Source: Paramoeba atlantica | Taxonomy: Eukaryota; Protista; Discosea | Reading direction: 5' to 3' | Length of the DNA stretch: 64,000 nt | Assembly: GCA_977017575.1 (NCBI GenBank) | Contig: CDRNVI010000012.1 | Span: forward strand, 62,001-126,000 | In this document: piece by piece, positions 19,885-57,515 of the stretch | Position numbering within the stretch: the first letter of the stretch is position 1 | Layout: each line of letters starts with the position of its first letter | Made by a program: the position numbers and the translations under genes | The notes under the pieces: model-generated | Told to the model about the DNA's origin: nothing | What the model saw: the letters and a program-made list of their open reading frames with translations, nothing else | Databases searched by the model: none

Positions 19885-20560
19885 TCCTCCTTCACTTTCG
19901 ACACTTTACCCTTCTCATTCCATGAGCGTTTCCTCCGAAAAGGTTCTCCTCGCCCTCGACGTCATCGACGCCCATTTCGGCGGCACCGTCACCCCCGTCG
20001 CACGACGTCTCCTCCACGCCCCCCTCCCCCTCCCCCTCCGGGACGCCGTTGTCGTCGACAACCTCTCCCCCGCCGCCGCCCTGGTCGCCCTCGGGGTCTT
20101 ATTCCAACACAACCTGCTCCTCCTGGGCACCGCCCCCCGCACCCTCGAGCTCAGTGCCCCCCGGGCGTGCCTGCGACTCGCCCACGCGCGGTTCCTGCAC
20201 GCCGCCCAGCAGCGTCTCGGGGTCCCCGGGGAGGTCATCACGGGGCTGTTCCTGGAGCACGGGCGGCTGTCGGAGAGCGCGCTGCGGGTGCAGCTCGCCT
20301 CGCGCTACCCCACCGCGAGCCCCGCGGAGCGCGCGAGCCACATGGGGGCGTTTCACCACATGACGGGCGGGAGTGTGCGCTATATCGTGCCCTGTCTCGC
20401 TGTGTCGTTGGGGAGCCCCAACGTTGGGGGGGTGGAGGGGTGTGAGGTGATCGGGGAGGAGGATCTGGAGGGGGAACCGTTGGTGAAAAGGTGGTGTCCA
20501 GAGCAAAGTAGCGCCGAGGGGTGTGAATCGGGAGGGCGGGTACAGCGCCCGGAGAATAAG
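19885..20560. other. C-rich to G-rich skew-flip island (flip about 20230)
   Basis: Leu CTC, Val GTC, Ala GCC codons before the flip; CTG/TTG, GTG, GCG, GGG after. Confidence 0.8.
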
Positions 20561-21349
20561 GAAAGGTCGGTACTGTATCGCCTGGATCTGATGCAGTTTC
20601 TGTATGACCTTCGGTGTGAGGCTATTCTGGGTTATGTGGATACGCTTTTTGTGGATCACAGCGTTTCTCGTACGTTCATGCGACGTATGATGGAACTGGA
20701 TGCCTCCCAGTTGGACCATCTGGAGAGCGCAGAGGGCTTTGCCCCTTTTCCCTCTGACACGACGCCAATTGCGGCGCACTCTTTGGCACAAAGTTTCGAA
20801 CAGTCCGGACCGGAGACGGAAAGTTTGCTACAAGGGCTCGCCTCTCCCGCAACAGGGCAATACCTGACGCGGCTCTCGGCTTCCTCCGGCCAGTCCCTGT
20901 ACTCTTTAAATCTACGAAAACTCTGCGATGAGATGCGTATTGAGGCCACAGAGAGTGTTCTGCGGCGTCGTTTTCAGCGGGAGGGACTGCGAATTTTCCG
21001 CCTTCTCACGCGGCACAAATTTTTAGAAGACATGGCGATATCGGAACTCGCTAAGATTGCGCCTGAGGTCGTGAGACGTCACCTGTTTGAGTTACTGCAG
21101 TGCGGTTTCGTGCGTACTCAGCGTGTTGCTGCAACGCCTAAAGACTTTCTTCTTTGGGGAATTAATCACACAAATGGCATGTCACAAGTGCTACAGAGCA
21201 CGTACCACACGATACGACTCATGCTTTCTCGATTAAAAGTCGAAAAGGATGTCTCAAGCGATGTGGCACTCACGGATAAAATGAGTTCAACACTCGCAAC
21301 TTCTATACTAAATATGATGGATATGGTCTTACTTTTGGAAGTTTTTTAA
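19922..21349 (+). CDS. RPC3: RNA polymerase III subunit RPC3/C82-like
   Basis: HFGGTVTPVARRLL and ALGVLFQHNL winged-helix start; GLRIFRLL...FLEDMAISELAKIAPEVVRRHLFELLQCGFV. Confidence 0.65.
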   Translation: MSVSSEKVLLALDVIDAHFGGTVTPVARRLLHAPLPLPLRDAVVVDNLSPAAALVALGVLFQHNLLLLGTAPRTLELSAPRACLRLAHARFLHAAQQRLGVPGEVITGLFLEHGRLSESALRVQLASRYPTASPAERASHMGAFHHMTGGSVRYIVPCLAVSLGSPNVGGVEGCEVIGEEDLEGEPLVKRWCPEQSSAEGCESGGRVQRPENKERSVLYRLDLMQFLYDLRCEAILGYVDTLFVDHSVSRTFMRRMMELDASQLDHLESAEGFAPFPSDTTPIAAHSLAQSFEQSGPETESLLQGLASPATGQYLTRLSASSGQSLYSLNLRKLCDEMRIEATESVLRRRFQREGLRIFRLLTRHKFLEDMAISELAKIAPEVVRRHLFELLQCGFVRTQRVAATPKDFLLWGINHTNGMSQVLQSTYHTIRLMLSRLKVEKDVSSDVALTDKMSSTLATSILNMMDMVLLLEVF

Positions 21350-21889
21350 ATGTGTGCAAATGAGCGCGGATGAATAGTATTGTCGCTTTCCTTTTATTGT
21401 ACGCCTTATGAATCGTACATGCACTGGACCTGAGATATTTGACTACACAACTTATTGACTACGTACCTTTATACTGTATTCTTTTTTAAACATGTCTGCA
21501 GTACACGCCGAAATTAATTCCTACTTCAGCTATTTTCTGGGACTCGTCATCACATCTCTTTGTATTGTTGCTCCACTTGTGTGGAATGCGCTGCGATCTA
21601 GAGGAATTCTTCGGACCCGCATTCCTTTACCTCTTCGGTGATGCCATGAGGAGCGGATAAACGACGTTTCGCATTCGAATGTTGGCGAATCGGCCTTTTT
21701 GCTAAACGGTATTGGAATGGTTCCCTGTCTGCGGTTCTCTTTTCGCCATCAAATTCAGGATCTGGTAACAAAACATATTCACGTCTTTGTATTTCTTTTA
21801 AAATTCAAAAAAGGAACTTTGGTTATTTACTATCACCGCAGTATATCTCGACGTTTACTATTTGCTATCTAACAGAAACCCTCTAGCTT

Positions 21890-22620
21890 AATCCTTCTTA
21901 TTCGTACCTTTCCACCTACGATGATATGTGATGACTCCATTTGGTCCATCATTGGACTCGGAAAAGACTCCTTCTGTTCCTACAAAGTCAAAACCAACAC
22001 GGGCACCACACTCTGTCGCAACCCCTACAATGTCACCGGGACCTGCTCCCGGTTGTTCTGCCCCCTGGCAAACGCCCAGTACGCCACGGTGCTGGAATTT
22101 GATAAAAAGTTATATCTCTATATGAAGACTGCCGAGAGGGCGCACACCCCACTCTACCTGTGGGAAAAGATTGAACTCCCCTCTGACTTTCGCGAGGCGC
22201 TGCGACAAATCGACTCCCATTTAATCTGGTGGGACAAATCCCTGCGGCTCAAGTGTAAACAACGAGCGCTGCGACTCACCCAAATGCTCATTCATCAGCG
22301 TAAGGCGGAGGCCATGGAGGAGGGCACGGAGTGGGTGAGGGTGCATAAAAAGGAAGAACGACGTCTCCAGGCTCGAGAGCGCAAGGCGGGTCGCGCGCTC
22401 AAGTCGGATCAAGCGATTCGTACCGAGCTGTTGAAACGGTTACAGGAGGGGCACTACGATACCATTGTGAACTGCGACACTGAAGCTTTTGAGAAGCTAA
22501 TCCAGGAGGAGGAAGAGGCGGAGCACCAGAAGGCAATGGAGGCCCTCGAGGACAGGGAAGATGCTGAGGGTAGGTATGTCGTTGACCAAGATTGGTGCGA
22601 AGAGGATGAAATGGAACTTG
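21890..22620. other. C-rich to G-rich skew-flip island, moderate (flip about 22250)
   Basis: C-ending codons 21960-22200, G-rich 22300-22620. Confidence 0.55.
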
Positions 22621-22823
22621 ACGCGTTGCAGCGTACCACGGGAGGGGACATTGAGGATCTTATTGAGAACCCAAAGAATAGAAAGGCCACTAAGAGTACT
22701 GGAAAGAAACGTTCATCTCCCTCTGATCGACCAACTCCTACTAAGCGCGAAAGGGTCGTCGTAAGACAGGAAATGGAATTTGAGACAGAGGAGGATCAAC
22801 CAGCGGAATCGCAGCTTGCGTAG
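21921..22823 (+). CDS. MAK16: 60S biogenesis factor Mak16
   Basis: FCSYKVKT...CRNPYNVTGTCSRLFCPLANAQYATV, LYMKTAERAHTP, KCKQRALRLTQ. Confidence 0.9.
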   Translation: MICDDSIWSIIGLGKDSFCSYKVKTNTGTTLCRNPYNVTGTCSRLFCPLANAQYATVLEFDKKLYLYMKTAERAHTPLYLWEKIELPSDFREALRQIDSHLIWWDKSLRLKCKQRALRLTQMLIHQRKAEAMEEGTEWVRVHKKEERRLQARERKAGRALKSDQAIRTELLKRLQEGHYDTIVNCDTEAFEKLIQEEEEAEHQKAMEALEDREDAEGRYVVDQDWCEEDEMELDALQRTTGGDIEDLIENPKNRKATKSTGKKRSSPSDRPTPTKRERVVVRQEMEFETEEDQPAESQLA

Positions 22824-22841
22824 AGAGAGAGAGAGAGAGAG
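22822..22841. repeat. (AG)n microsatellite at the MAK16 stop
   Basis: TAGAGAGAGAGAGAGAGAGAG. Confidence 0.85.
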
Positions 22842-24656: not shown

Positions 24657-24699
24657 TATTCTGAGAATTGGGTGTTGAACGTTGGCACTAAAAATATTC

Positions 24700-26059
24700 T
24701 TTTTTTGACACATACTGTGTTCGATACGAAAACGTACACTGCGTTCGATAATCCAGTGGAAGCGCGAGTAGCCTCTGAGAGAATGCGAGATGAAACCTGC
24801 GATTTAACTTCCCATTCGAAGACAATCGCGGGTGGCAGTGGCACAACGCTTTTGGAATTAACATGAAATAATCCTGCCAAGAAAACAGTTACGGTTGATT
24901 TGCCGTTAGTTTCAGAAATTTTAAGAGTTTTCGTTCCAATTTGCGTAAGCGTAATACCACGTATTACGCTGTACGTATCACGTGGGATTACGTAATACCA
25001 CGTAATACACGTATTTCGCCATCCACACTCATCTCCAAAGGTTTCATCTCAAAAGAAGTCAGAGTATTTGCGAATGCTATGTTGTGCAAAGAGCTGACGG
25101 GACCATCCATGTATGCTCTGAGAAGTGTGTGTTGGCCAAACATAATGCATTCTGCCAAATCTCTGCCAAGTCCATCCAAACACATGCATGTATCTGATAC
25201 ATGTATCTGAAGTGTTGGTAGACACGTTCACGTCTCCGTTCCGTCACTTCTTACGGAAAATCTGAGTGTTTGTTTATTAGATCAAAGACGTGATCTTTTG
25301 AAATATGAAACATACCGTTTTGCAACGCCAGCAAATCCCTATGAACTAACTCCATAGTGCCCTGGCGCTCTGCGTTGAAGCCACGTTCTCTTTTCCTTGA
25401 CGCACCACCTCGATTCAAATGCTTCTGGTAATGTTGTATACCATTCTTTCGAATCCTTGTAATGGTGGGTAACGCAGTCCCATACTTTTTCGCAAGCTTT
25501 TTGTTTGAGCAAGAAGATTTACAAATTGAAACCTTCTCTTGCATTGTCAAACTACGCTGAGAAGTAGGATGAACTTCTGGAGCACTTGGAAGCGATGGTG
25601 CTGCTGGAACTGACGCGACAGAACAGTTGGCCAATAGACCAATACGGGGATGGGGCTCCTATATCCGTACCCAGCAAGTCAATTTTCTGGTTTGTGAATT
25701 AGGAGGATTTTCAGGGGGGGAGAGCAATGAAGGGGGTAGAATGGTGGGGTTGCCATTCTCTGCTGAAGATTCAGCTGAAGGTGGGGAGAGAAATGAAGGG
25801 GGTTGAATAGGGGGGTGCCACTCTCTGCTGAGGATTGAGCTGAAGGTGGAGAGAGAACCATAATGGAAAAAAACAAAGAATTTAAAAAGAACTAATTAAA
25901 CTACCTAATTAAACAAAACTAGCTATTACGTAGAGTAATGCGTGTGTACTTTAATTTACTACACTTAAAATGTAGTACGTACATTTTCCCAACTTTTATT
26001 ACGGGTTGTCAACTTCTTCTGGGTCGCAAACTTGTATCGCAGGTTGTCCACTTGCACGG
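24700..26059 (-). pseudogene. Degenerate pogo/Tigger-like (DDE_1) transposon
   Basis: CENP-B-type HTH (EKVSIC...KKLAKKYGTALPTITRIRKN), a DET codon run, KSTVTVFLAG...LPPAIVFE; candidate end TA|CCGTGCAAGTGG at 26059; about 70-bp tandem duplication 25710-25855. Confidence 0.55.
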
Positions 26060-26434
26060 TAGGACATTTTTAAAGGTACATGTGGAGTGAGGTATGTGGA
26101 GCGATATAGTATAATCTAATTAATATAGTATAATCTAATTAAAATTTTAATCTAATCATTATTTCACAAAAAGTGGTGGAAAATATCTACGGGCGGTACA
26201 GAATATGTAATATTACAATCGATAATAAAGATGAAACAAATTTCATGCCTAATGATGAGAATCTGCTAGGGACATTTGATAAAACATGAAAAATTATAAG
26301 CGAAAAGTAGTTCTACTACTATCTGAATTTGAAGCGGTTGACGCAAACCCGCTTTTTGGGAGGATTTTGCGTCACCTCAGTTCCGTTATAAAAGAATAGG
26401 GTTCGCATTTTTTCGGTTTAAACTTAAGCTACTA

Positions 26435-27280
26435 CTCCCTCTCTCATTAATTTTTATAAATGGATCTCGAGTTATAAAAATTTAGTTTATGCGGGATCAT
26501 TAATTTTTATAAATCAGAAATTTATCGAACGCTATTTCTTAATTTTTTTCTAAAACAAAGAATTTTCTGTTATTCTACTTAAGATGGATTATTTTGTGAA
26601 CGTGGATGGACGCGCTTCGAAGAAATTTCTTACAGAAAAGCGCAAATGGTTGATTTCTATACTGGAGGCATAGAAGGCATGTAATATCACTTACTTTCTT
26701 AAAGAAATGTTTCTTTTATGCGTTTTTAGATGTACCGTCACCCCCCCTCCCTTGACTTAGCCTGCCAAAAAGTCGAAAAAATAGAAAAAAGCGGATAAGT
26801 CGCCCAGCCGACTGCGGGCCTAATTTGTCCGAAGGAGCGTCTTCGTTGCTCGGTCGCAATCCTATGTCGTAATGCATACTGCACTGCCGGATCCCAGGAG
26901 TTCTTCCACGTAAATTCAACCAGGACAGGTGGAATCGGTCGGGATCGTAAATCTCTAGTTTCAACCCTCTCAGCTTCAGATATTAGATTGATTCGTGAAA
27001 AAATGCTCATGTAGGGGAAAAGACAATCTTTTTGGGGGGGATTTTCTTTCTGAGATGAAGATACTGATTTTTGTAAAACGCGATTCACTGAAAAAGCATG
27101 GGGAAGCATGGTCGGGACCTACTCGCGGTCTTCCCTGGCACTACCATCTTACAGATCGTACAACGCCGACCTTTTTTTGGAATAGCGGTCATTTATACGG
27201 GATCATTAATTTTTATAATTATAATTATAACTCACTTTTTGTTATAATTTATAATTTATAAAAATTAATGAGAGGGAGAG
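26435..27280. mobile_element. Stowaway/mariner-type MITE (846 bp), TA TSD
   Basis: 27-bp TIRs CTCCCTCTCTCATTAATTTTTATAAAT, 25/27 match; same family as 36393-38035. Confidence 0.85.
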
Positions 27281-27713
27281 TACTTACTCTAGCCTTTCTG
27301 AAATTTCTGACGTACGCTCCATGAGGTTATCACAGATGTCACCCTGTGGAGATTCGAAATCCTCATGGATATGGGGATCTTTATGTGTGTTTTCGAAATT
27401 TTAAAAGTGAGAAGGAAATACATCTCTCTTTATACGGAATTTAGAGGCAGTGCCGCGTTTTATTTTAGAAGATTGTTATTGCGGTAATAACATACATCAA
27501 TAAATATAACGGTAATAACACCGTTATCAATACCGTTCTAATACCGTATCAATATAAAACGGTCAATGTTATAACGGTGACAATATTATCTCTTGAGCTA
27601 AAAATATTACCTTTCGGGCCTGTCGGACAGAAAGTACCATTTATTTGTATTTAATATCAGTAAAGTATTAGTAATAAAGTCAAAAACGTTACATTTTTAT
27701 CCCGTCTCGCGAA

Positions 27714-29834
27714 ATGTTACGTCGTCTAGTTGCTCCTTCAGCTCTTGGCTGTATTTTTTTTCCTCGGGAAACTTTGAGATGGTATATGGCGCTCAACCCC
27801 ATAACTGGAAATATTTTCAAGTATAGAACGTGTATGGAGGAGCTCGGCGTCGCCGCCGAACAAAGAAAGTACGAAAGTCCGTATTGGTTGACAGCTAATC
27901 AGCTAAAAACTCTTGTTCAAGGCGGATACGATATTGCTTTGAAAGAAAATCAAACGCCAATTCAACTCGTACAAAAAAAGCGACCGAGGCGCAAATTCTC
28001 GGATGAGAACAGTACCGAAGAAGCAGAACCAGTTTCTGAAGAACCAGTTGAACCCACTATTAAAGAGTACTACAATGCGGAGCAAACCACAGACAGTTCT
28101 ATTATTGAGAAACACGGAAAGCTGGCCCCGCTCTATAAAAAATTCAAATTCGTACCTCGCAATGCCAAGACAAATAAGATGTACCCGTTTCCTGGTTGTA
28201 TGATACTTCGCGTACAACAGATCCGAAATCGGTATAGGAGCGGTCTATGGCTCGCAGAAAATCAAATTGAGAATGAATCTGACATTTCCCTAAAAGAGGA
28301 CAGCAAACCAGTAAAACTGACATTTATGAAAAAAGAAGAGGACGACAGCTTGACGCCTGTCGAAACTGTTGTCTACCATATCGATCAAACTACTGACGCC
28401 CGTCGTTTAAAAATAGCACACACTCGCAAGAAGAAAACGGCGTTTAGTGGTCTAACAGGGAAAGAATATGCGCAACACTGTCAAGAAGCCCTAGTTGATG
28501 TGGCTATTACGCAACCCAATTATAGTAAATACTGGGTAACAGCGGGTCAGATGTCCAAATTCATTCCCCCTCTCAAACTAAAACCTGATATGAAAGGGGT
28601 CCCATTGAAAATGACCGATCTTCGAACTGGAAACAAAGTAGACGTCATGGTGTACAACATTGCGCAACTCGAGAACCGCACCGTTGTCCAAACGCACATA
28701 AAAAAACTCCATGGCCACCCGATTCATTACACCATCCTCTTCATCGGGGGCTTACTCAACAACACCGAGGAGGAGCTTCGCGCGGTGCTCCAGCAGTACG
28801 GCAAAGTGGAGCGTATCCAAGTGAAAACAGGCTTCGCGTTTGCCTATTGCTACTCCAAGTCCGACGCGGAGAATATTGTCTCCAAGTGCTGCGGGATGTC
28901 GCTCGGGGAGGCGCAGAGCCTTCACGTGGAGCTCGCACGGACAAAGTCCCAGACCGCGTGTCGGTCCATGGTGGAGACCGGGAAGTGTGTGTTCGGGGAG
29001 AAGTGCAAGTACAGCCACGACCCGGAGGTGCTGACCCTACGCGGGGGCCGGCGCCGAGGGGGGGCAGAGGAGGAGGGCGGGGAGCGGGGGGGACGAGGGA
29101 GGGGTGGGGGGTGGGGGGAGAGCAGAGGCCGCGGGTGGGGCACTCGAGGAGGGGGAGGGGGAGGCTGGGGGGAAAGTAGAGGAGGGGGAGGCTGGGGGGA
29201 AAGTAGAGGAGGGGGGTGGGGGGCCCCGGGTGGTCGTGGAAGAGGCGGTGGATGGGGTTCGCAGGAGGGAGGCAGAGGGGGTGGATGGGGTTCGCAGGAG
29301 GGGGGCAGAGGGGGTGGATGGGGTTCGCAGGAAGGGGGTAGAGGGGGTGGATGGGGTTCGCAAGAGGGGGGAAGAGGGGGTGGATGGGGTTCCTCAGACC
29401 GTGGAAGAGGCGGCTGGGGATCCTCGGACCGTGGAAGAGGCGACTGGGGATCCTCCGAGGGTGGCCGAGGGGGTGGATGGGGGTCCTCAGGCGGTGGACG
29501 TGGCGGTGGATGGGGTCCCAGTGCCGGTGGAGGGAAACCTGACGGAGATGGAAGCGCTGCGGGCTGGGGAAAATCCACTCAAGGCGGAAATGCTGGGTGG
29601 GGGAAGACCGGTGAAGGAGGTGGATCGAGTGGAAACTCCGGATGGGGTAAATCAGCGCAAGGAAGTGCCACCGAAGGCTCCTCGGGATGGGGAAAATCTC
29701 CCGCGTCAGGCGGTAGTTCGAGTGGATCAGCGGGTTGGGGGAAGTCTTCTGAGGGCGCGAGCGGAACATCTTCGGGCGGTGGATGGGGGAAATCCGGCGC
29801 TTCAGCTTCTTCAGGAGGGTGGGGACGTCGATAA
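27714..29834 (+). CDS. Tc38/RBP38-like protein: three ArdC-N-like ssDNA-binding domains, RRM, CCCH finger, GWG/RGG tail; likely mitochondrial
   Basis: MLRR N-terminus; three repeats of N/S..T.+.Y...W....Q...Y(N/H)..Q; LFIGGL and TGFAFAY RNP motifs; CRSMVETGKCVFGEKCKYSH; more than 20 GWG motifs. Confidence 0.7.
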   Translation: MLRRLVAPSALGCIFFPRETLRWYMALNPITGNIFKYRTCMEELGVAAEQRKYESPYWLTANQLKTLVQGGYDIALKENQTPIQLVQKKRPRRKFSDENSTEEAEPVSEEPVEPTIKEYYNAEQTTDSSIIEKHGKLAPLYKKFKFVPRNAKTNKMYPFPGCMILRVQQIRNRYRSGLWLAENQIENESDISLKEDSKPVKLTFMKKEEDDSLTPVETVVYHIDQTTDARRLKIAHTRKKKTAFSGLTGKEYAQHCQEALVDVAITQPNYSKYWVTAGQMSKFIPPLKLKPDMKGVPLKMTDLRTGNKVDVMVYNIAQLENRTVVQTHIKKLHGHPIHYTILFIGGLLNNTEEELRAVLQQYGKVERIQVKTGFAFAYCYSKSDAENIVSKCCGMSLGEAQSLHVELARTKSQTACRSMVETGKCVFGEKCKYSHDPEVLTLRGGRRRGGAEEEGGERGGRGRGGGWGESRGRGWGTRGGGGGGWGESRGGGGWGESRGGGWGAPGGRGRGGGWGSQEGGRGGGWGSQEGGRGGGWGSQEGGRGGGWGSQEGGRGGGWGSSDRGRGGWGSSDRGRGDWGSSEGGRGGGWGSSGGGRGGGWGPSAGGGKPDGDGSAAGWGKSTQGGNAGWGKTGEGGGSSGNSGWGKSAQGSATEGSSGWGKSPASGGSSSGSAGWGKSSEGASGTSSGGGWGKSGASASSGGWGRR
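28680..29830. other. C-rich to G-rich skew-flip island (flip about 28850) containing 30-bp tandem repeats
   Basis: Short C-rich arm, long G-rich arm; GGTGGATGGGGTTCGCARGARGG units about 29247-29390. Confidence 0.6.
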
Positions 29835-30171
29835 GTCCTGAACTTTATTGTCGGTACGATGGATGGTACCGGCGTAGCAAATTCCGAAGCTCACATTGTA
29901 TATGTATTCTCTATTTAGTCCAAGACTTTTATGTTATAACCTTAAAGACGGTGCTCATAGATGGCACTCACGGCGAATTATGTAGACCAAAGAAGTATAA
30001 AAGGCTATAGCGTGGAGTAATGAGACCTTAGTATAACCGATGAGAAATATTACTTGCATGTAAAGTGACAGTCAAGTCACTATTCATGACTACTCCATGT
30101 TATTTCTAGTCCTCATTTTATGTAGATTAGTTAGGTGTATTACTAACTTAAAGTACCAAGTACTGTGTTAC

Positions 30172-42314: not shown

Positions 42315-42809
42315 TGCTGCTTCGTTTTATCATAGTAGATGCGAAAAAAAGTAAATGCGCTTTCGTGCAGAGAAACTGATGTGTGTACTTGTAGCAAGTG
42401 CGACATGCGAGTTCAATGACGGGATAGCAATTTAGAATTTGTAGCTATAAAAATTTCGGCATGCAAAACATTATTCTGTGAATATTTGGAAAAATAGCGT
42501 TATTTGGCTCTTACAATCTTGTTTCTTGCATTAAAAAGTTAGGCTCCTGTAGATATTTTGAAACCAAAATGGGGAAAAAAACATTTTGAAACCAAAGTAG
42601 TTGCGTTTTAGGCAATGTGCCGTAAAATTGGCCTCAGATTTTCAATGAAGCGGGATTTCTATTTTGGGAAATGGTCATCGTACATAACCTGCATCTCATT
42701 CATACACCTTTCTTCATAGGAACATGAATTTTAGTTTCAACTAAATGACACTATCTCGGCGGCATTGCCGTTTCTGAAAAAAATATCTGAAACGACTCAA
42801 CTTCACCTA

Positions 42810-44110
42810 CACACGCCTACACCATGTCCTCATCTACTGCGCCGCCTCGACGTTTCGAGCGTCGCGACCCACCCCCCGGTCGCCCACCCCCCCGCCCCAC
42901 CGACGACCACCACTCCTCCCTCGGCCCCAACACCGCCGCCAACAAGGAACTCCTCCGTGACTTCTTCCTCACCACCCGTGGGCCACCCCCCCTCGACCTC
43001 CCACCCCCCGACACCAGCTCCCCCCCGTACTACCCCCCCCTCCTCCACGCCATCGCCTCCCGTCAACGCTCCACCCTCCCCTTCTCCCTCCCCACCCTCG
43101 CCGCGCACAGCCCCGAATGCCACACCCTCGCCCACCACATGACCACCAACATCCTCTCCGCACTCGAGGACGTCACGGAGGTCGTGGACTCACTTCTCCC
43201 CTCTTCTTCTTCCACGACTCCTTCCACTCCCCCCCCTCCCCCCGCCGACCTCCTCGACCACCTCTCCCTTGAGTTCGGCGACCAGCTCCCCAGGGCTCTT
43301 ACCCGTCGCTTCCGTCTCGAGCTCACCCCCCTTCCCCCTTCAACTCCCCCCCTTCACCACTCCCCCTTCACCCCCCTGCGCCACATGAAGGCCACGCTCA
43401 CCGGCGCCCTCCTCCAGCTCCGCGGCACCGTCACCAGCGCCTCCCCGGTGCGCCCCGTGCTGCGCGTGCTCACCGCGCTGTGCGAGCTGTGCTCCGCGGT
43501 GACCTTCGTGGAGGTCCCCGGGGACACGTTCACGATGCCCACCAAGTGCGGGAGTGGGCGCTGCCGCGGGTCCGGGCCCGGGGGGGGCGGGATGCTGCGA
43601 CCGCAGTACCAGGCGTCCCGGATGACGAGCTACCAGGAGCTGCGGCTGCAGGAGCTGCGGGGGGACGTGCCGCGGGGGACACTGCCGCGGACGGTGAAGG
43701 TGGTGTGTGAGGGGGAGCTGTGCTGTGGGGTGGCGTCGCCGGGGGGGACGGTGGTGGTGCTGGGGGCGCTGGTGCCGGATTTGTCGTACAGTGTGTCGAG
43801 GCGGTTCAGGGGGGATTGTCAGGTGACGCTGGTGGTGCAGGCGTTGAGGTGTACGCCGATGAGGAGGGATTACGCGGAGGGGCTGCCGTCGGGGGAGGTT
43901 ACGGCGGCGTTGCAAGGGGTGCGGGGGGAGGAGGATGCGACGAGGATGCGGAAGGCGGTGAATAGTATTGCGCCGGAGATTTTTGGGCTCTCGGAGGTGA
44001 AGAAGGTGGTGTTGTGTCTGCTCGCGGGCGGGGACTCGGTGCACACGAAGGACGGGATGATTATTCGTGGGGATATTAATGCCTTGCTTACGGGAGACCC
44101 TGGGGTGGCG
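42810..44110. other. Strongest C-rich to G-rich skew-flip island (flip about 43480); weaker second flip about 44800
   Basis: Near-exclusive C-ending codons 42850-43450 and G/T-ending codons 43530-44110. Confidence 0.85.
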
Positions 44111-45184
44111 AAGTCGCAAATCCTAAAGTGGGTCTCGGGCGTCGCCACCCGGGGCGTGTTCACCTCCGGAATGGGAAGCTCTGGGGTAGGGCTCACCGCC
44201 GCCGTGGTCAGCGACCCCATCACCGGGGAAAACATGCTCGAGCCCGGTACGCTGATTTTCGCCGACAAAGGAGTGTGTTGTATTGACGAGTTCGATAAGA
44301 TGAACGAAAGCGATCGCACCGCGCTGCACGAGGTGATGGAGCAGCAAACCATTAGTCTCGCAAAGGCGGGGATTATCACCACAATGAACTGCCGCACTGC
44401 AGTGCTCGCCGCCAGTAACCCACAGTACGGGCGGTGGAACAGCTCCCGCACCCCCATGGAGAACATTAACCTCCCCACCGCACTGTTCTCCCGGTTTGAC
44501 ATCGTCTGGGTTATCCGGGATCGTTACAACGAGGAGGACGACAAGAATCTGGCCACCCATGTCGCGCTGGTGCACACCCACCCCGAGGCTGCGGTGACGC
44601 AAGACCGACACGACCCCAACGCCGCCGGCGTGTCCACTCTGGACGAGCCCACGCTAGGCACCGATCGTTGCTACGACCGTCCCACGCTGCTCGCGTACCT
44701 GGCCGATATCAAGTCCGTCCAACCTCGATTTTCCCCCTCGAGTGTCCAGTTGATTACGGATCTGTACTTGCTGATGCGACGAGAGGGCAACCACGGGTTC
44801 GCGGTGACCACACGTAACCTGCTGGGTATTCTCCGTCTCTCCCGGGCTCTCGCTCGTCTGCGGTACAGCCCCGCGATTGAGGATGCGGACATTAAGGAGG
44901 CCGCGCGGCTGCTGGAGCTCAGTCGGGTGAGCCTCGTGGAGCAGCCCGAGGTCACCCACCGTGGGGCACTGCAGAAGAGCGACGTGTACAACATGATTCG
45001 AGACTTCTTCGGGGCCCTCCCCGCCGGGTCCGTGGTGCAGGTCCAAGAGTGCCGAGATGGGTTACGCAGGCAAGGGGTCTCGGAGGCCATGTTGCGAGAG
45101 ACGATTGATATGTATACCCTGCTGCGGGTGTGGACGCATGGGGAGAACTACGACGTGCTGCATATGGTAAGTGGACTGAGTTAA
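42824..45184 (+). CDS. MCM7: MCM2-7 helicase subunit, most like MCM7
   Basis: GDPGVAKSQIL, GSSGVGLTAAV, CCIDEFDKM, DRTALHEVMEQQTIS, LFSRFD, TTRNLLGILRLS. Confidence 0.9.
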   Translation: MSSSTAPPRRFERRDPPPGRPPPRPTDDHHSSLGPNTAANKELLRDFFLTTRGPPPLDLPPPDTSSPPYYPPLLHAIASRQRSTLPFSLPTLAAHSPECHTLAHHMTTNILSALEDVTEVVDSLLPSSSSTTPSTPPPPPADLLDHLSLEFGDQLPRALTRRFRLELTPLPPSTPPLHHSPFTPLRHMKATLTGALLQLRGTVTSASPVRPVLRVLTALCELCSAVTFVEVPGDTFTMPTKCGSGRCRGSGPGGGGMLRPQYQASRMTSYQELRLQELRGDVPRGTLPRTVKVVCEGELCCGVASPGGTVVVLGALVPDLSYSVSRRFRGDCQVTLVVQALRCTPMRRDYAEGLPSGEVTAALQGVRGEEDATRMRKAVNSIAPEIFGLSEVKKVVLCLLAGGDSVHTKDGMIIRGDINALLTGDPGVAKSQILKWVSGVATRGVFTSGMGSSGVGLTAAVVSDPITGENMLEPGTLIFADKGVCCIDEFDKMNESDRTALHEVMEQQTISLAKAGIITTMNCRTAVLAASNPQYGRWNSSRTPMENINLPTALFSRFDIVWVIRDRYNEEDDKNLATHVALVHTHPEAAVTQDRHDPNAAGVSTLDEPTLGTDRCYDRPTLLAYLADIKSVQPRFSPSSVQLITDLYLLMRREGNHGFAVTTRNLLGILRLSRALARLRYSPAIEDADIKEAARLLELSRVSLVEQPEVTHRGALQKSDVYNMIRDFFGALPAGSVVQVQECRDGLRRQGVSEAMLRETIDMYTLLRVWTHGENYDVLHMVSGLS

Positions 45185-45359
45185 GGGGGTGGGGATGTGG
45201 ATGAGAAAAAATGATCCTTTTGTGTAGTTTTTTGGATCGTACCGTTTTGGTAGAGTGTTATTGTACAGCGCTTCCTGAAAGTGTGTACTGTTTTCGCAAG
45301 TACACGTATGCTGTCACTCTTGATTAAACATGGTATGGTTGCAAAGGTAAGTTCTTGTT

Positions 45360-45389
45360 TTTGCTGTATTTCATTTCTTTCTGTTACAG
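45360..45389 (+). promoter_or_regulatory. Candidate trans-splice acceptor for uL13m
   Basis: TTTCATTTCTTTCTGTTACAG, 11 nt before ATG 45401. Confidence 0.45.
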
Positions 45390-45400
45390 ATATCCCTCCG

Positions 45401-46033: not shown

Positions 46034-46208
46034 CCTAATATGGGGAGGTTGTGTTGAGTTGTAGATGTTGTGTTGAGTTGTAGATGTCCCTGTACAATGA
46101 TATGTACACTACACTGGAGTGACTACAGTGGAGTTGTACAAAAGAATTTTTTGAACATAATGTATTCATTTTCTTTAGAAATATTGCAGTTACTTATCCT
46201 ACATTCAA

Positions 46209-47543
46209 ATGCAAGCCGTTCCACAGTCTCCCATTCACGACAGCACATGGAAAAATGCGCTCCATGGCACCGTAATCGTATGCGCACTCCAGCTCTTGCG
46301 TAGTTTGTGGCAACAACGCAAAGCGTCTCGTCAGCCTACCTCTAGCGCCCTGCAACGACTGAAGAAAGCCAGCCGAGCAAAGGACTTCGCAGCCGTCGAG
46401 AGTGTCGTGGACGACCTCCTCTCCCTCCTAGAAGACGATTTACAAAACAAAAAAGCCGGATCCAAACTGGAACTCGAACACAACTTCCACCACTTAGTCA
46501 CCCACCTCCTCGCCCACCACAACAGCATCACCGAGGTCTGTCTCCTCAAAGCCCTCCGTCTCATCCGCCAATGCTGCCACGACGACCCCCCGTGCAGCGC
46601 CGCCTTCGCCCACGCCCACGGCATCCGTCATCTCGTCTCCCTCCTGCAAAACGCCCACGCCCACGCTTCCCTCGCCCCCATGACCGAGATCGCCCACACC
46701 CTTTTCCAGTGCACCGCTGTCCCTTCTGAGTCCTCTGAGTCCCCTGAGTCTCCCCCCGCCCCCTCCGCGGCCCTCGCACTCCTCTCCCTCTCCTCTGTGG
46801 TCAACTCCATGCTACGCACGCTGGACCCCACTGCCCCCGAGCCCTTCCTGGCCGCCATGGTCGGGGTCTGTGCCAACCTGTGTGCGCTCCCCCACGGCTG
46901 CCGTACCCTCGCAACCGCCGTGGACGACAAGCCCGGGGCGGGGTACTTTATTCCCTTGTTGGCCCACAGTGGCAGTAGTGGGAGTAGTGGGAGTAGCAGT
47001 AACTCGGGTAACGTCGTGGAACGCGCCCTGCTGGTGTTACACCGTATGGCGACCCACGCGCTGCCGGATTGCGTGGCTGTGCTGCGGGGGCCGGAGAGTG
47101 TCCACGCGCTGGTGGAGCTGCTGGAGGTGCGTCGGGGGGGGAGCATCGCGGGGATCGCGCTGCAGGTGGTGGGGGTGATGGTGCAGGAGACCGGGAGGGA
47201 GGACCGGGAGGGGTTTCTGCGGGAGTTTGTGTTGCAGGATGGGATTGATGGGTTGTACACGTTGTGGTGTTCCGGGACGGATCGGGGGTGTAGGGACCGG
47301 GCGGAGGGGTTGGTGCAGGTACTGGATCGGGATGCGGTGTGGGGAGGGACGGTGCAGAAGTTAAGGGAGGTGTATGGGTCGATGATTGCACGTCGTCGAG
47401 AGGCGGACCAAAAGGAGCAGAAGCAACGGATGCAGAGTATGCAGCAACAGCGTATGTTTCAGCAGATGATGATGGAGCAGATGGGAATGGGTGAGGGGAT
47501 GGGAGGAGGGATGGATGAGATGATGGGCGAGGAAGAGATGTAG
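46209..47543 (+). CDS. ARM/HEAT-repeat protein of unknown function with Gln/Met/Gly-rich tail
   Basis: LKALRLIRQCC, GIRHLVSLL, AMVGVCANLC, VERALLVLHRM helical repeats. Confidence 0.55.
   Translation: MQAVPQSPIHDSTWKNALHGTVIVCALQLLRSLWQQRKASRQPTSSALQRLKKASRAKDFAAVESVVDDLLSLLEDDLQNKKAGSKLELEHNFHHLVTHLLAHHNSITEVCLLKALRLIRQCCHDDPPCSAAFAHAHGIRHLVSLLQNAHAHASLAPMTEIAHTLFQCTAVPSESSESPESPPAPSAALALLSLSSVVNSMLRTLDPTAPEPFLAAMVGVCANLCALPHGCRTLATAVDDKPGAGYFIPLLAHSGSSGSSGSSSNSGNVVERALLVLHRMATHALPDCVAVLRGPESVHALVELLEVRRGGSIAGIALQVVGVMVQETGREDREGFLREFVLQDGIDGLYTLWCSGTDRGCRDRAEGLVQVLDRDAVWGGTVQKLREVYGSMIARRREADQKEQKQRMQSMQQQRMFQQMMMEQMGMGEGMGGGMDEMMGEEEM
46400..47540. other. C-rich to G-rich skew-flip island (flip about 46930)
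   Basis: C-rich 46480-46860, G/T-rich 46970-47540. Confidence 0.8.
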
Positions 47544-47876
47544 CGGTTCATGAGTCTATGGACCTTGCGTAGAACTTGTCAACGAACGGGGGGGGATACA
47601 TTGTTACGTTTATGGATTAGCTGAATGTGACGAACTACTAATGCTTTACAAAATTTAGTACGTACATTACGTGCGTCTAAAAATTGTATAAATATGGATT
47701 ATCTCGGCTTTCAAGAAGATAACCAGCACGAAAATGGAAAGCAACGAATGTTTTATCCGATAGTCGACCTTTTTTTGTGATAGTACGTTTCAAATGAAAT
47801 ACTTTTACGAAGGCTCTGTATAACATAATGTTGGATTTAGAAAACCAATTCTTTTATCAATGCTATTGATCCAAAA

Positions 47877-50716: not shown

Positions 50717-50827
50717 CTGTACCCCCCCCCTAGTTATCTGTCACACATCATCCCCCCTAGTTACCTGTCACTTTTTGTCATTTCGAATATTTTTTCGTCG
50801 ACCACCCCCCCTAGTTATCTGTCACAG
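50717..50827 (+). mobile_element. 111-bp mini-element, TA|CTGT...ACAG|TA, with three CCCCCCTAGTTAYCTGTCAC direct repeats
   Basis: Motifs at about 50725, 50752 and 50805; diverged copy at 13285-13397. Confidence 0.7.
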
Positions 50828-50875
50828 TAATACCAAATCATCTTCTTTGAAACTCATTCTTAATCCACAGAACCT

Positions 50876-51720
50876 TTAACTCCATCCCTCTACACTCTTC
50901 CTTCCCCGCTCCACCCACCCTACCCCCCCCCCTCCCCCATGCACACCGTCCTCCACAACAACCTCAACACCATCCTCCACCCCCTGTCCTCCGGAACACA
51001 AAAGCTTGCGATCCTCTCCCTCGGCTTCACCGCCGAGAACACCCTCACCCCCAAGCTCGCCCTGGAGCTCTCCACCAAGCTCGCCCAGCTCGCCTCCGCC
51101 CCCGCCATCCACGGCGTCGTCCTCACCTCCGCCTGGCCCCGCGTCTTCACCGCGGGCCCCTGCGTGCGCACGCTGCTGCAGCCCCGCACCCTACCCTTTG
51201 TGCTTCTCCAGAATGCCACCCGCACGCTCTACACCCAGCTGCTGCTGTACCCGAAGCCCACCGCCGTGGCCCTCGCGGGGCACTGCCCCTCCTATGGCCT
51301 CGGGCTCGCGCTGGCCTGTGATGAGCGGGTGATGGCCCATGGCCCGAGCCGAGGGGGGGAGAGGACGCCACACAGGAATCGGGAGGAGGGTGAGAGCACA
51401 GGGAAGGGGAAAACGGAAGGGAGGGGGGGAGGGGAGGGGTCGGTTGAGGCGTACCGTATTGGGTTTCCCGAGACGACGTTGGGGTTGACGGTGCCACGGT
51501 ATATGGTGGCGCATCTCGCCCATGTGGTGGGACCGGGTGTCGCGGAGAGACATGTGCGGGAGGGGAGGTTGTGGACGGCGTGTGAGGCGAAGGAGGTGGG
51601 GTTGGTTGATGAGGTGTGTTCAGAGGCTCAGGTGTTGCGTACCGCGATGGGGTGTATTTTGCCGCACACGCAGGGCTGTCCCTCAGCGTGGGTCCGGGCG
51701 AAATGTATGCTGCGGGGAAA
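50876..51720. other. C-rich to G-rich skew-flip island (flip about 51290) extending into 5' non-coding DNA
   Basis: C-runs upstream of ATG 50939, C-ending codons to about 51290, then G-rich. Confidence 0.85.
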
Positions 51721-51847
51721 TCTGGCGTATCAAGTAATGAATTCGGGGATGACGACACTGGACCGTGCGATATATGTGAATCATTTCCGAATGCACGCGG
51801 CGGAGATTTCGCGACGTGTGCGCAATGGTGGAGAAGGAAAGTTATGA
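50939..51847 (+). CDS. Crotonase-fold enoyl-CoA isomerase/hydratase (ECI1-like)
   Basis: GVVLTSAWPRVFTAG, GHCPSYGLGLALACDERVM, IGFPETTLGL, AKEVGLVDEV. Confidence 0.75.
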   Translation: MHTVLHNNLNTILHPLSSGTQKLAILSLGFTAENTLTPKLALELSTKLAQLASAPAIHGVVLTSAWPRVFTAGPCVRTLLQPRTLPFVLLQNATRTLYTQLLLYPKPTAVALAGHCPSYGLGLALACDERVMAHGPSRGGERTPHRNREEGESTGKGKTEGRGGGEGSVEAYRIGFPETTLGLTVPRYMVAHLAHVVGPGVAERHVREGRLWTACEAKEVGLVDEVCSEAQVLRTAMGCILPHTQGCPSAWVRAKCMLRGNLAYQVMNSGMTTLDRAIYVNHFRMHAAEISRRVRNGGEGKL

Positions 51848-52222: not shown

Positions 52223-52262
52223 CAGGGGGGTGCACGAAAATATGGGGGGGTCTAAAATTATA
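52223..52262. mobile_element. Tc1-type end fragment that hosts the 52265 MITE
   Basis: TA|CAGGGGGGTGCACGAAAATATGGGGGGGTCTAAAA. Confidence 0.6.
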
Positions 52263-52264
52263 TA

Positions 52265-53011
52265 CAGTGGTTTCAGTTGATCTTGCCCCCCATCGGAATT
52301 TTGATTTTTTTTTCCGTTTTTGCTCATCTTTGCAGCATTGGAGAGATCTCATTCCCCTAGCGAAGAGCTTTGCCGCCTTTTTTCATAGAGACCCCCTGGT
52401 GCCCCCTGGGTGACCCGAAAGTTGACCAAAATAACAACAAATGACATTTTTTTGCCCATGAAAAATAGAGCAAAAAACGGATTTTATGTCCAAAAGTTAA
52501 CTCTGAAGGCAAAGAACTAGTATCCGGAATGGCTTCCATTGTTTTGCAACACGCTTCGAAGTCTATTTGGGATTGAATCAATTGTGTTGCACACATTGTG
52601 GGGTTGTCTTCTCTTTTGTCATTACATTGTTCGACGCACTCCCCCTGTTTGGGGTATGAGGGTCTGATCTTCATAATGTAGAGGTGTTGACTAAATTGAA
52701 CTAGGCAATAGAGAGGGTACTAGACATAGAGCTTTCAAATTATCAATTTAGAACGCTATCACTCGTACTTACAAGTGCAAAATATACAGAAAATCGGGAA
52801 AATGTGGCAAAAAATGGTTGTGTACACAGAAAAACTCCGCAAAAACAGTTTTTTTGGACCCAGGGGGCACCAGGGGGTCTCTATGAAAAAACGGCGGCTA
52901 AGCTCTTCGCTAGGGGAACGAGATCTCTCCAATGCTGCAAAGATGAGCAAAAACGGATAAAAAAAATAAAAATTCCGAGGGAGGGGGGGGCAAGATCAAC
53001 TGAAACCACTG
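52265..53011. mobile_element. Tc1-type MITE (747 bp), about 150-bp TIRs, TA TSD
   Basis: TA|CAGTGGTTTCAGTTGATCTTGCCCCC ... GGGGGCAAGATCAACTGAAACCACTG|TA; inverted similarity continues to about 52413/52858. Confidence 0.9.
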
Positions 53012-53177
53012 TATATTCCTTGGAAATCGTTCGAGGAACGTGAATTACCGTGAAGGAATTTTTCTTTAAGAATCAGTAATCTCAGAGAAATACATAGAAA
53101 CGCGAAAGTATTATGTAGTAGTCCTGTAGTATTTCTTAGGTTCAGTAGTCCTTTTCTTTTAGGTACGTAACTAGCGC

Positions 53178-56216: not shown

Positions 56217-56396
56217 AAAAGCAGTCCAGAGTTTCTGATCTTTCTGAGAATTAAATGAGTAGCGTATTCTTAAATTATTTGTTTCATAAATACAATGTGT
56301 CTTACTTTTGTCCAACAATTTGTCTGATTCTTAATTTTACACTTCACTAAACATATTATTGTTGAACAAGCATCATTTACTGGTTGTATTCTGTAA

Positions 56397-57515
56397 ATGG
56401 AAGGTGAAAGTGAACATGCCCTTTCGCAGAGTGCCGAGTCAACTTCGGCGGAAGAATCGGACACTTCCGTTACCTCCTCAAGTACGTTGGGGTCTACCAT
56501 AAACAGCGCCTCCTCCATCGAAGAGCAAGACCAAAAAGATAAAGAGACGGAGGAAGACGACACAACGAAGGACGCGGATCCCAACATTCAAACCCCCCAC
56601 GACCTGCAAACCGTCCGCCATAACGCGGCCCAGAAACTACAGGACGCCCTCGACCCGGTCTCTTCCCGTGTCCGTGATAAAACCGCTCTTGCCGCTGCCG
56701 TTAACCTGTACTTCCACGTGCTGCACTTTCAGACCCGAGCGTTAGGAGAGACGCACCCGGAGTGTGCTGCGTCGTATTTCGACTACGCCAACTGCTTCTT
56801 CCGTCTGCTTCAAAAATCTCTCGACGACGGGGACAAAGATGAGCGAGAGGATGAAAACACACGAGAGGACTGGGATGTGGTCACGGAGTGTTTGTTCCGG
56901 GCGCTCTCCGGGGCACAGCGTCGAGGAGACCCTGAGCTCACCTCCAAGTCACTCCACACGCTGTGCAGCGCGTATGTGGAGAGAGAGGACTTTAAGGCAG
57001 CGCGAGATATTGCGGAGCGCCGGGGGAGGGAGTGTCCCAGCACGGAGGGGACGCTACAGCTCGCACAGACGTACCTGTTGTGTGAGCAGTACACCTCCGC
57101 ACTTGCGGCGCTGGCTCCGTTGCGACGGGAAGGTACAGAGCTGAGTGAGACGCAAAAAGAGCAACTGGAGGAGATGGAGGAATTGTTAAAGGAGAACGAC
57201 CCGACGAAGCTGAAGTGGGAGATCAGAGGTTTAGCCAAAAGTGTTAAGGTGGCGCACACGAGCCTGAATCCTGCCACGGGGAATGTGATCTCGGTGTTTC
57301 AAACCACGGCACGTATCGATAACCAGAATACATTATCCACAACGAATTCAGCAAACAACGTGGCAAAAGTAACGCACGTGGCTCGCTCTAAAAGATCAGC
57401 GGACGAGGCTTGCGTCACTCGTACCGAAACTCACTCCGAAAAAGAGGCAGAAACTGCAACTCAGAATACCCACACTAGTTCAGGAAACTCGGCAAAGACA
57501 TTGCGTGTGGATTGA
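56397..57515 (+). CDS. NASP/Hif1-like TPR histone chaperone
   Basis: LGETHPECAASYFDYAN, EDWDVVTECL, acidic N-terminus. Confidence 0.55.
   Translation: MEGESEHALSQSAESTSAEESDTSVTSSSTLGSTINSASSIEEQDQKDKETEEDDTTKDADPNIQTPHDLQTVRHNAAQKLQDALDPVSSRVRDKTALAAAVNLYFHVLHFQTRALGETHPECAASYFDYANCFFRLLQKSLDDGDKDEREDENTREDWDVVTECLFRALSGAQRRGDPELTSKSLHTLCSAYVEREDFKAARDIAERRGRECPSTEGTLQLAQTYLLCEQYTSALAALAPLRREGTELSETQKEQLEEMEELLKENDPTKLKWEIRGLAKSVKVAHTSLNPATGNVISVFQTTARIDNQNTLSTTNSANNVAKVTHVARSKRSADEACVTRTETHSEKEAETATQNTHTSSGNSAKTLRVD
56500..57240. other. C-rich to G-rich skew-flip island, moderate (flip about 56800)
   Basis: C-rich 56560-56760, G-rich 56850-57230. Confidence 0.6.

Follow-up and report, generated by a model that had tools for sequence, protein, structure and literature searches.

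GC-rich islands with a C-to-G skew flip inside genes of a kinetoplastid-like protist: candidate break and repair hotspots

Genes and GC-Rich Islands of the Window

The window analyzed here is a stretch of 64 kb from contig CDRNVI010000012.1 of the Paramoeba atlantica assembly GCA_977017575.1. Its genes are those of a kinetoplastid-like protist, and the genes that host the islands described below are otherwise ordinary. The + strand carries every gene across the island-bearing part, about 14-61 kb. A GC profile of the 64-kb window displays a background of about 0.42, while islands of 0.58-0.72 GC are found at 901-1200, 19901-20900, 28801-29800, 42801-45200, 46501-47400, 50901-51700, and 56601-57200, with a weaker one at about 22000-22500. 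An additional GC island at 15401-16000 contains no flip. When the flip centre is defined as the minimum of cumulative G-C, nine centres are obtained (960, 20218, 22296, 28766, 43474, 44872, 46919, 51301, and 56822). Four of these islands are strong (20218, 43474, 46919, and 51301) and four are weaker (960, 22296, 44872, and 56822), and the strengths grade into a continuum.

The strongest island (42824..44100, centre 43474) covers the N-terminal half of MCM7 (42824-45184). Its GC skew goes from -0.78 to +0.57 and the third codon positions from C3 0.90 to G3 0.87, with A3+T3 near 0. The 3' part of the same gene contains a weak second flip (44500..45200, centre 44872; D=0.25 at GC 0.59, C3 0.50-0.57 to G3 0.57-0.60). 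The island centred at 20218 (19800..20700) lies in the 5' part of a POLR3C-like gene (19922-21349) and has a GC content of 0.64, a skew of -0.44 changing to +0.62, and C3 0.83 followed by G3 0.57. The third strong island (46470..47540, centre 46919) is found in a gene without a Pfam match (46209-47543); here the skew changes from -0.54 to +0.61 and C3 0.83 to G3 0.83, and a polymorphic 9-nt Ser/Gly repeat is situated at the centre. The fourth (50870..51700, centre 51301) belongs to an enoyl-CoA hydratase gene (50939-51847), with skew -0.82 to +0.57 and C3 0.80 to G3 0.67, and its C arm begins about 70 nt upstream of the ATG.

The preliminary description listed at least seven main islands and weaker ones near 950 and 44800. 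All of these flips were recovered, while the islands near 22250 and 56800 proved too weak for the main rank. The former (21921..22640, centre 22296) lies in Mak16 (21921-22823; C3 0.50-0.57 to G3 0.47-0.53, D=0.28) and the latter (56560..57290, centre 56822) in a TPR gene (56397-57515; C3 0.57 to G3 0.60, D=0.24). The island at 700..1300 (centre 960) is found in an amine-oxidase-like ORF (38-1273; C3 0.30-0.37 to G3 0.43-0.50, D=0.27). An ambiguous island (28600..29850, centre about 28766-28956) is located in a Tc38/RRM/CCCH gene (27714-29834). A C-to-G flip is present also here, as had been reported near 28850, but the C arm is only a weak peak (C3 0.40-0.53 at 28614-28880, then G3 0.57) and the island is otherwise mostly G-rich, much of it being the tail of the gene. 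This tail encodes Gly repeats (G1 and G2 0.6-0.87) and includes 33-nt tandem repeats at 29176-29516. A G-skewed, GC-rich 3' tail is also found in this gene of relatives (L003 12101-12650, L005 12201-12650), and the island at 28.8-29.8 kb is in part an ancestral Gly-rich tail.

The averaged GC peak is bell-shaped, falling from 0.74 at the flip centre to about 0.47 by ±700 nt, and the profile extends over ±600 nt. The centres were proposed to be CpG-rich, and the density is indeed raised, at 7.5-13.5 CpG per 100 nt compared to 5.0 for the window. The observed/expected ratio is however 0.62-1.18 at the centres and 0.98 for the whole window, and with ratios around 1 in both, the high density is a by-product of composition. 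Islands that escape methylation stand in a CpG-depleted background, which this window does not have. No common sequence motif was seen by eye within ±60 nt of the centres, and no tRNA or known RNA genes were found in the window that could serve as landmarks.

Polarity and Symmetry of the Skew

All nine flips run from C-rich to G-rich on the + strand (sign test p=0.004) and no island of opposite polarity was found, so that the order originally described as invariable holds throughout the window. Strong skew jumps within GC-rich DNA (D of at least 0.4; at 20219, 28956, 43456, 46968, and 51263) are likewise all C to G, and G-to-C transitions of similar size all mark outer island edges. Runs of at least six C number 22 in the left arms and 0 in the right arms, while runs of at least six G number 21 in the right and 0 in the left; since runs are not independent, these counts are descriptive.

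The averaged GC skew is antisymmetric around the centre (-0.6/+0.56) and returns to about 0 by ±700 nt, with amplitudes of 0.6-0.9 in the islands. The top strand of the left arms resembles the bottom strand of the right arms (C 0.44-0.53 vs. 0.41-0.47). This rotational symmetry bears out the proposal that the pattern reads the same on both strands and that the process acts outward from a fixed centre. The strand going 5' to 3' towards the centre is C-driven on each side, and its complement is G-driven. AT skew does not flip at the centres. The arms are imperfect mirrors of each other (p=0.003).

Such a polarity would be expected if the islands were bidirectional replication origins, where replication-linked differences in mutation between the leading and the lagging strand make the leading strands G-rich in both outward directions. 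The C-to-G order on the + strand matches that of bacterial origins, and human skew jumps and CpG islands share it (PMC2817419). On the outward strand A→G is far above T→C, and clusters of G4 motifs are found on the outward strands (7/7 minus-strand clusters in left arms, 6/9 plus-strand clusters in right arms). Nevertheless, origins seem unlikely. The skew disappears within about 600 nt and is not replicon-long, there is no switch in A-to-T skew, the spacing of the centres is irregular with gaps of 1.4 to 19 kb, and replication asymmetry leaves a GC3 near 1.0 at the centres unexplained. In addition, the mapped origins of trypanosomatids lie at transcription-unit borders or in intergenic DNA.

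It is even less likely that the islands are internal bidirectional initiation zones for RNA polymerase II, in which the G-rich outward strands would play the part of the nucleosome-depleting, GT-rich promoter elements known from trypanosomes, with transcription-linked R-loops reinforcing the skew. Synthetic GT elements of 210-416 bp give directional transcription, attract H2A.Z, and lower nucleosome occupancy (PMC5579346). Within each arm of the islands, G runs of at least six are confined to the outward strand, the arms, at about 400-600 nt, are similar in length to the GT elements, and as trans-splicing rather than the start site sets the mRNA, a start within a coding sequence is conceivable. 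Yet all nine centres lie inside + strand ORFs of one co-directional array and not at transcription-unit boundaries. An equally strong left arm would send antisense transcripts into this all-+ unit, and selection for sense transcription would therefore not build it. T is not enriched alongside G (0.06 at fourfold sites in the right arms), the islands cost protein sequence, and relatives with the same gene order lack them. The one RNA-like contig found (330 nt, 46558-46887, undirected), in itself of little informative value, does not begin at a centre.

The C-rich and G-rich arms are able to pair, and long antisense ORFs are present in the islands. It is nonetheless very improbable that the islands represent a selected long mRNA foldback, overlapping antisense genes, or an assembly artefact, since each of these is contradicted by a test. 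The preliminary description had offered a long imperfect foldback as an alternative, but the native sequence folds no better than its arm-wise shuffles (z -0.7 to +0.6) or a version with reversed right arm, and no inverted repeats join the arms. None of six antisense ORFs has a Pfam match. The contigs that bear on an artefact are described below.

Substitution Bias at Synonymous Sites and Protein Cost

The third codon positions carry the skew, and GC3 is about 1.0 at the centres. At fourfold sites C/G is 0.72/0.13 in the left arms and 0.15/0.73 in the right arms, compared to 0.21/0.21 in the background. The fourfold-site check proposed earlier, here done for the window, thus gives the expected flip, and the possibility that the skew is limited to non-synonymous positions does not apply. 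The signal is strongest at synonymous sites, yet amino acids are shifted too; the C arm of MCM7 encodes 18.6% Pro vs. 4-6% in orthologs.

At synonymous sites, T→C on the top strand of the left arms gives a C fraction of 0.92 vs. 0.41 (lnOR 2.75), and A→G on the top strand of the right arms a G fraction of 0.89 vs. 0.42 (lnOR 2.37). The reverse classes are weaker, with lnOR 1.19 for A→G in the left arms and 0.06 for T→C in the right arms. R-ending codons of the left arms are enriched for G (0.70), and Y-ending codons of the right arms are at background (0.43). An equal AT-to-GC bias on both strands, as plain GC-biased gene conversion (gBGC) would give, is not found at these sites. The decrease of G to 0.13 in the left arms and of C to 0.15 in the right arms, from a background of 0.21, further requires a bias between G and C. 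The bias is accordingly not plain gBGC.

A bias of the type "any base to C" on one strand might also arise from a strand-asymmetric mutagenic process at fixed sites, acting without repair from a homolog, for instance error-prone gap filling at fragile or stalled sites. The bunching of variants at the centres (see below) would fit as well. This explanation is regarded as improbable. An activity that inserts dC on refilled strands would be expected to give the opposite polarity, and homopolymer runs are no commoner than composition predicts, the counts of C and G runs being equal to those of codon-position shuffles, so that slippage-type run expansion is not seen. We know of no polymerase bias that yields the island pattern.

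Relatives and Independent Samples

Whether an island follows the gene or the locus was raised as a question in the preliminary description; the answer from orthologs is that it follows neither. No islands were found in about 90 kb of relatives' orthologs, compared to 8-9 in 64 kb here. The MCM7 orthologs on L001 and L002 are island-free, and the POLR3C-like and Mak16 islands are missing from three syntenic orthologs each. The islands are therefore lineage-specific, and a tie to a gene family or to a conserved locus is rejected. Taken together with the rotational symmetry and the synonymous-site signal, this points to a process at the DNA level around a fixed point.

The assembly was checked with reads for the region 42500-47800, which contains the MCM7 and 46919 islands. 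Contigs of two samples span 42614-47594 with 0 and 13 differences, respectively. Since DNA contigs of an independent sample hold both of the islands checked, chimerism, raised earlier as a possible explanation, is rejected for 42.6-47.6 kb. In sample X2 the 46919 island has seven differing sites and a 9-nt insertion after 46976, and two substitutions are found at 43474 and 43477, i.e., at the flip and 3 nt away. Eleven of the 13 X2 substitutions fall within the two strong islands (p=0.004; p=0.05 with clusters collapsed), a number that concerns unpolarised differences in assembler contigs along one 5-kb stretch, partly microsatellite.

A Possible Origin in Break Repair

Origins, internal initiation sites, and repair hotspots had all been suggested, and of these repair hotspots give the best fit to the features. 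Origins and initiation sites would give the same polarity, but they leave unexplained that GC3 is near saturation at the centres, that the AT skew does not flip, that the signal decays over about 600 nt, and that the arm that faces antisense is equally strong. Each island may tentatively be seen as a fixed, long-lived break or recombination hotspot with strand-asymmetric biased mismatch repair, a reading whose probability falls somewhat short of even.

According to such a model the DNA would break recurrently at the centre and be repaired from the homolog, most likely as a recombination hotspot. Resection of the 5' ends would leave the two inward-running strands as 3' tails. These would pair with the homolog, and mismatch repair would reset the tails to match the donor, though not equally well for all mismatches. 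G/G and T/G would be well recognized and a G or T in the tail swapped out, while C/C, and to a smaller extent C/A, would escape repair so that the C of the tail is retained. On balance, C would be transmitted preferentially on the tail strand, making the DNA C-rich to the left and G-rich to the right with the AT skew unflipped. A weaker, ordinary AT-to-GC conversion bias would be superimposed, and the large population of a free-living protist might allow the bias to push synonymous sites near saturation. That putative hotspots thereby record themselves, with C/C escape and T/G preference on the invading strand writing the flip at the break point, is possible but on balance doubtful.

Several observations fit the hotspot model. 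Across fungi, animals, and prokaryotes, repair of C/C is 3-5 times poorer than that of other mismatches, and G/T is the mismatch repaired best (PMC3218862). C/C escape predicts the bias between G and C at fourfold sites, and the absent AT-skew flip would follow from repair of both A/A and T/T mismatches. The scale of the islands, with the GC peak gone by ±700 nt, matches that of resection and heteroduplex tracts, and a modelled gBGC peak near human transcription starts has a comparable width of 350 (PMC13712754). The implied population-scaled biases correspond to ln odds of 1.2-2.8, of the same order as the B=2.45 of human hotspots (PMC13712754). Lineage specificity and the continuum of strengths fit birth and death of hotspots. 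A drive that overrides protein sequence, as gBGC does in gerbils (PMC7403616, PMC6573468), and the concentration of X2 differences in strong islands also count in favor of hotspots.

Other observations count against them. Good G/T repair predicts G→A on the tail strand, which is seen neither in the G-enriched R-ending codons of the left arms nor in the Y-ending codons of the right arms, which are at background, and a second, symmetric AT-to-GC component must therefore be added to the model. The imperfect mirroring of the arms is a further argument against it, and cytosine deamination on single-stranded 3' tails alone would give the opposite skew. To our knowledge no comparable skew is known at yeast, bird, or dog hotspots, and a literature search found none. 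Nor was any description of mirror C-to-G islands found in the literature on skew at double-strand break hotspots and on gBGC in kinetoplastids.

Should the islands be hotspots of breakage and repair, recombination initiation could be mapped from one assembly in a group where sex is hard to observe, and a non-adaptive force would be rewriting essential proteins such as MCM7. Were the hotspots in addition self-recording, break sites could be read at near-nucleotide resolution from one genome, which would be strong indirect evidence of frequent sex in a free-living kinetoplastid. The hotspot model would also imply a strand-asymmetric biased gene conversion that standard gBGC models ignore, and asymmetric conversion may then contribute, in other eukaryotes as well, to the GC skew of stable hotspots. 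If the islands are instead origins or internal start zones, they would have no precedent in a kinetoplastid as sequence-defined, densely spaced, intra-coding elements of that kind. Either way, unmodelled islands mislead gene finders, codon-usage measures, and dN/dS tests in this genome.

Comparison with Known Systems

The gBGC peaks at stable recombination hotspots of PRDM9-less vertebrates, and the runaway GC of gerbils, resemble the islands in being local, kilobase-sized GC peaks at synonymous sites that override protein sequence, are lineage-specific, and call for a similarly strong bias (B about 2.5). The bias of the islands differs in being strand-asymmetric, with mirror symmetry around a point; one strand per arm lacks T→C, and exchange between G and C is driven. 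The islands are furthermore situated within coding sequences of a polycistronic array and not at promoters.

Mammalian CpG-island promoters and origins share with the islands a GC-rich centre and a C-to-G order that holds on either strand (Polak and Arndt, 2009; PMC2817419), and recombination, replication, and transcription have all been proposed as the cause of this skew inversion (PMC2817419). The islands differ in being intragenic and in having a background that is not CpG-depleted (0.98), which means that they do not result from methylation escape. The skew of mammalian CpG islands is also much smaller, roughly 0.1-0.2.

The GT-rich dispersed Pol II promoters at the divergent start regions of Trypanosoma brucei represent the same phylum-level biology, and the promoters have G runs on the strand leaving the centre and an element size similar to that of the islands (PMC5579346). 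In the islands T is not enriched and GC3 is near saturation. Divergent start regions of T. brucei are several kb wide and located between transcription units, while the islands are 1 kb and found inside one co-directional array. Finally, the skew jumps at bacterial and human replication origins share with the islands an upward C-to-G jump at a point, whereas the skew of the islands is local (±600 nt), lacks an AT-skew component, and is accompanied by a GC peak.

Positions and Polarity of the Islands

The window carries a dense, intron-less gene array, almost all of it on the + strand, at a background GC of about 0.42; no tRNA or Rfam RNA genes were found in it. The genes bear kinetoplastid hallmarks: one encodes a Tc-38 domain protein, and the named relatives of MCM7 and Mak16 are kinetoplastids (trypanosomatids, Perkinsela, and an entry of EukProt under the label PhF_6).

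Using 200-nt windows with a GC of at least 0.58, islands are found at 901-1200, 15401-16000, 19901-20900, 28801-29800, 42801-45200, 46501-47400, 50901-51700, and 56601-57200. The flip centres, taken as minima of cumulative G-C, are at 960, 20218 (POLR3C-like gene), 22296 (Mak16), 28766, 43474 and 44872 (both MCM7), 46919, 51301 (enoyl-CoA hydratase), and 56822, while the island at 15401-16000 is without a flip. All nine centres in the window lie inside ORFs, which may be biology or merely high coding density. Many housekeeping genes of the window have no island, and the antisense ORFs in the islands have no Pfam match.

The preliminary description stated that the flips always run from C-rich to G-rich, and this holds for nine of nine centres (sign test p=0.004), G-to-C jumps of comparable size being found only at the outer edges of islands. 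The five largest C-to-G skew jumps in the window are all at a GC of 0.62-0.70. The strong islands are those at 20218, 43474, 46919, and 51301, where the 100-nt skew goes from between -0.4 and -0.8 on the left to between +0.5 and +0.6 on the right. Runs of at least six C are confined to left arms (22 against 0), and G runs of that length to right arms (21 against 0). A small C-to-G jump at 25556 is not an island; it is produced by a G-rich tandem duplication (25713-25857, period about 66 nt, 87-89% identity) in a low-GC spacer.

The island near 28850 belongs to the set only in part. A weak peak in C at third codon positions (C3) at 28614-28880 resembles the other islands, but the 28.8-29.8 kb island is mostly a Gly-rich tail containing tandem repeats of 33 nt and having G1 and G2 of 0.6-0.87, and a similar G-skewed, GC-rich tail is also present in relatives. 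The centres are dense in CpG, as described, but this is no separate feature, since observed/expected is about 1 there versus 0.98 for the whole window, which displays no sign of methylation-driven CpG decay.

Other repeats were also noted. A poly-C run followed by TAGTTAYCTGTCAC is found in three copies at 50722-50830, in the spacer preceding the enoyl-CoA hydratase gene. Between this gene and that of carnosine N-methyltransferase, about 450 nt are bracketed by inverted repeats some 150 nt long and 88-100% complementary (52260-53016), which looks like a MITE-like element. Recurring terminal-repeat ends, TACTCCCTCTCTCATTAATTTTTATAAAT and its complement, at 26430-26529, 27203-27282, 36391-36429, 36644-36671, and 38004-38040 point to a family of small TIR elements in the island-free stretches.

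Assembly artefact is ruled out for the two islands of 42614-47594, which are spanned by assembler contigs from two samples. A 6621-nt contig from run X1 covers 42614-47800 with no differences to the window, and one of 4990 nt from another sample (X2) covers 42614-47594, differing by 13 substitutions and a single 9-nt insertion. The two islands within 42614-47800 are thus genuine DNA, the check covering this one 5.3-kb stretch with two strong islands. A long imperfect mRNA foldback, put forward earlier as an alternative, was rejected: no inverted repeat joins the arms, and the fold energy of the ±250 nt equals that of within-arm shuffles (z -0.7 to +0.6).

Codon Positions and Strand Bias

The third codon positions carry the strongest signal. 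In MCM7, C3 reaches 0.90 and is followed within about 150 nt by a G3 of 0.87, with A3+T3 near zero. Fourfold sites in the left arms of the four strong islands have C 0.72, G 0.13, A 0.04, and T 0.11, and those in the right arms G 0.73, C 0.15, A 0.06, and T 0.06; in the background, taken from 15 genes lacking islands, the values are C 0.21, G 0.21, A 0.26, and T 0.33. Codon positions 1 and 2 are also shifted. The C arm of MCM7 contains 18.6% Pro (4-6% in two orthologs) and the G arm 12.9% Gly (about 8% in orthologs), while Lys, Asn, Ile, and Tyr are underrepresented. Compared with the orthologs, the C arm is 32-40% identical and the remaining protein 66-68%; the two orthologs match each other at 55% and 76% over the same parts. 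Together, the third-position signal and these shifts show that the force is mutational or transmission-like, not codon selection, and that it overrides protein sequence.

Averaged over the strong islands, GC forms a bell, with 0.74 at the centre and background again by ±700 nt; GC skew is antisymmetric and AT skew has no flip. The C content of the left-arm top strand matches that of the right-arm bottom strand. In left arms, Y-ending twofold codons have 92% C versus 41% in the background (lnOR 2.75), and R-ending codons 70% G versus 42% (lnOR 1.19). In right arms, R-ending codons have 89% G (lnOR 2.37), while Y-ending codons stay at background with 43% C (lnOR 0.06). Ordinary GC-biased conversion does not account for this pattern. 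These codon classes, and the fourfold loss of G on the left and C on the right, give the rule that whichever strand runs 5'->3' towards the centre acquires C at the expense of all three other bases, and the complementary strand gains G.

Three processes have a geometry in common, in which the G-rich strands would be those made 5'->3' outward from a point: the refilled resected strands at a break, the leading strands at an origin, or the RNA-like strands under divergent transcription. Replication origins would account for the polarity and for A->G exceeding T->C, but the short range, the absent AT switch and the GC peak do not fit, and origins are considered unlikely. Bidirectional Pol II start zones are made more plausible by T. 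brucei, where coding-strand G/T runs drive directional transcription and deplete nucleosomes (PMC5579346). However, the antisense-facing arm is equally strong in a one-directional array, which argues against selection for promoter function, and there is no T enrichment, making such zones a quite improbable explanation.

Comparison with Relatives and between Samples

In the two closest relatives in the database (L001, L002), the MCM7 ortholog shows no island, its GC3 being flat. Three more loci (L003-L005) are syntenic with 1.7-31 kb of the window, sharing the series pseudouridine synthase, Mpp10, cytidylyltransferase, POLR3C, Mak16/PRMT, Tc38, and V-ATPase C, and none of the three has a POLR3C or Mak16 island. 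The absence of flip islands from about 90 kb of relatives, versus eight or nine in the 64-kb window, means that the islands arose in this lineage, the relatives compared being distant (Mak16 identity 51-57%). The gene order is POLR3C-PRMT-Mak16 in L003 and L005, and POLR3C-Mak16-PRMT in L004 and the window (1692-31311), which also has additional genes and transposons between Mpp10 and POLR3C. The HSP90 gene of one relative (L001, 541-2856) is GC-rich throughout (0.62) without a skew flip; this reflects normal codon bias in a highly expressed gene, which makes it a helpful negative control.

When the X2 contig is compared with the window, 11 of the 13 substitutions fall in the two strong islands, together 45% of the contig (p=0.004, or p=0.05 counting clustered changes once). 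Two are at 43474, at the flip, and 43477, 3 nt away, and the 2.7 kb separating 43819 from 46537 contain none. The variant cluster at 46976-46991 is length variation of an in-frame 9-nt repeat, AGTGGSAGT (Ser/Gly), located at 46967-46996 in the gene at 46209-47543, some 50 nt to the right of the 46919 flip centre; X2 has one additional unit after 46976, with three substitutions close by. A third sample (X4) has the X2 alleles at 42707, 43210, 43474, 43477, 43819, and 47662, and reference alleles at 46982-47145. This mosaic is only a hint, of either a conversion-like patch over the second island or a heterozygosity artefact in assembler contigs.

Break Repair as a Possible Mechanism

Break repair with biased conversion at the centres is tentatively favoured, because it would explain the GC bell, the synonymous near-saturation, the protein override, the lineage specificity, the graded strengths and the clustering of polymorphism, and because the polarity is predicted by known preferences of mismatch repair. 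Among mismatches, G/T is repaired best, and C/C 3-5 times less well than the others (PMC3218862). The 3' tail retained on either side of a break would be the inward-running strand. A tail C opposite a donor C would be kept, while a tail G opposite a donor G, or a tail T opposite a donor G, would be replaced, and the tail strand would presumably be driven to C with AT skew unchanged. The weak point is that the model predicts tail-strand G->A, which is absent in the data, unless a symmetric AT-to-GC bias is added. A mutagenic process of unknown kind is a further, rather doubtful, explanation. The readings could also combine, a nucleosome-free G-run region itself attracting breaks.

A search of a library of papers gave no description of such islands in kinetoplastids, nor of skew flips at DSB hotspots. 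The log-odds of the bias implied here, 1.2-2.8, are of the same order as the B=2.45 estimated for human recombination hotspots (PMC13712754), and the nearest published parallels are human CpG islands (PMC2817419) and the runaway GC of gerbils (PMC7403616).
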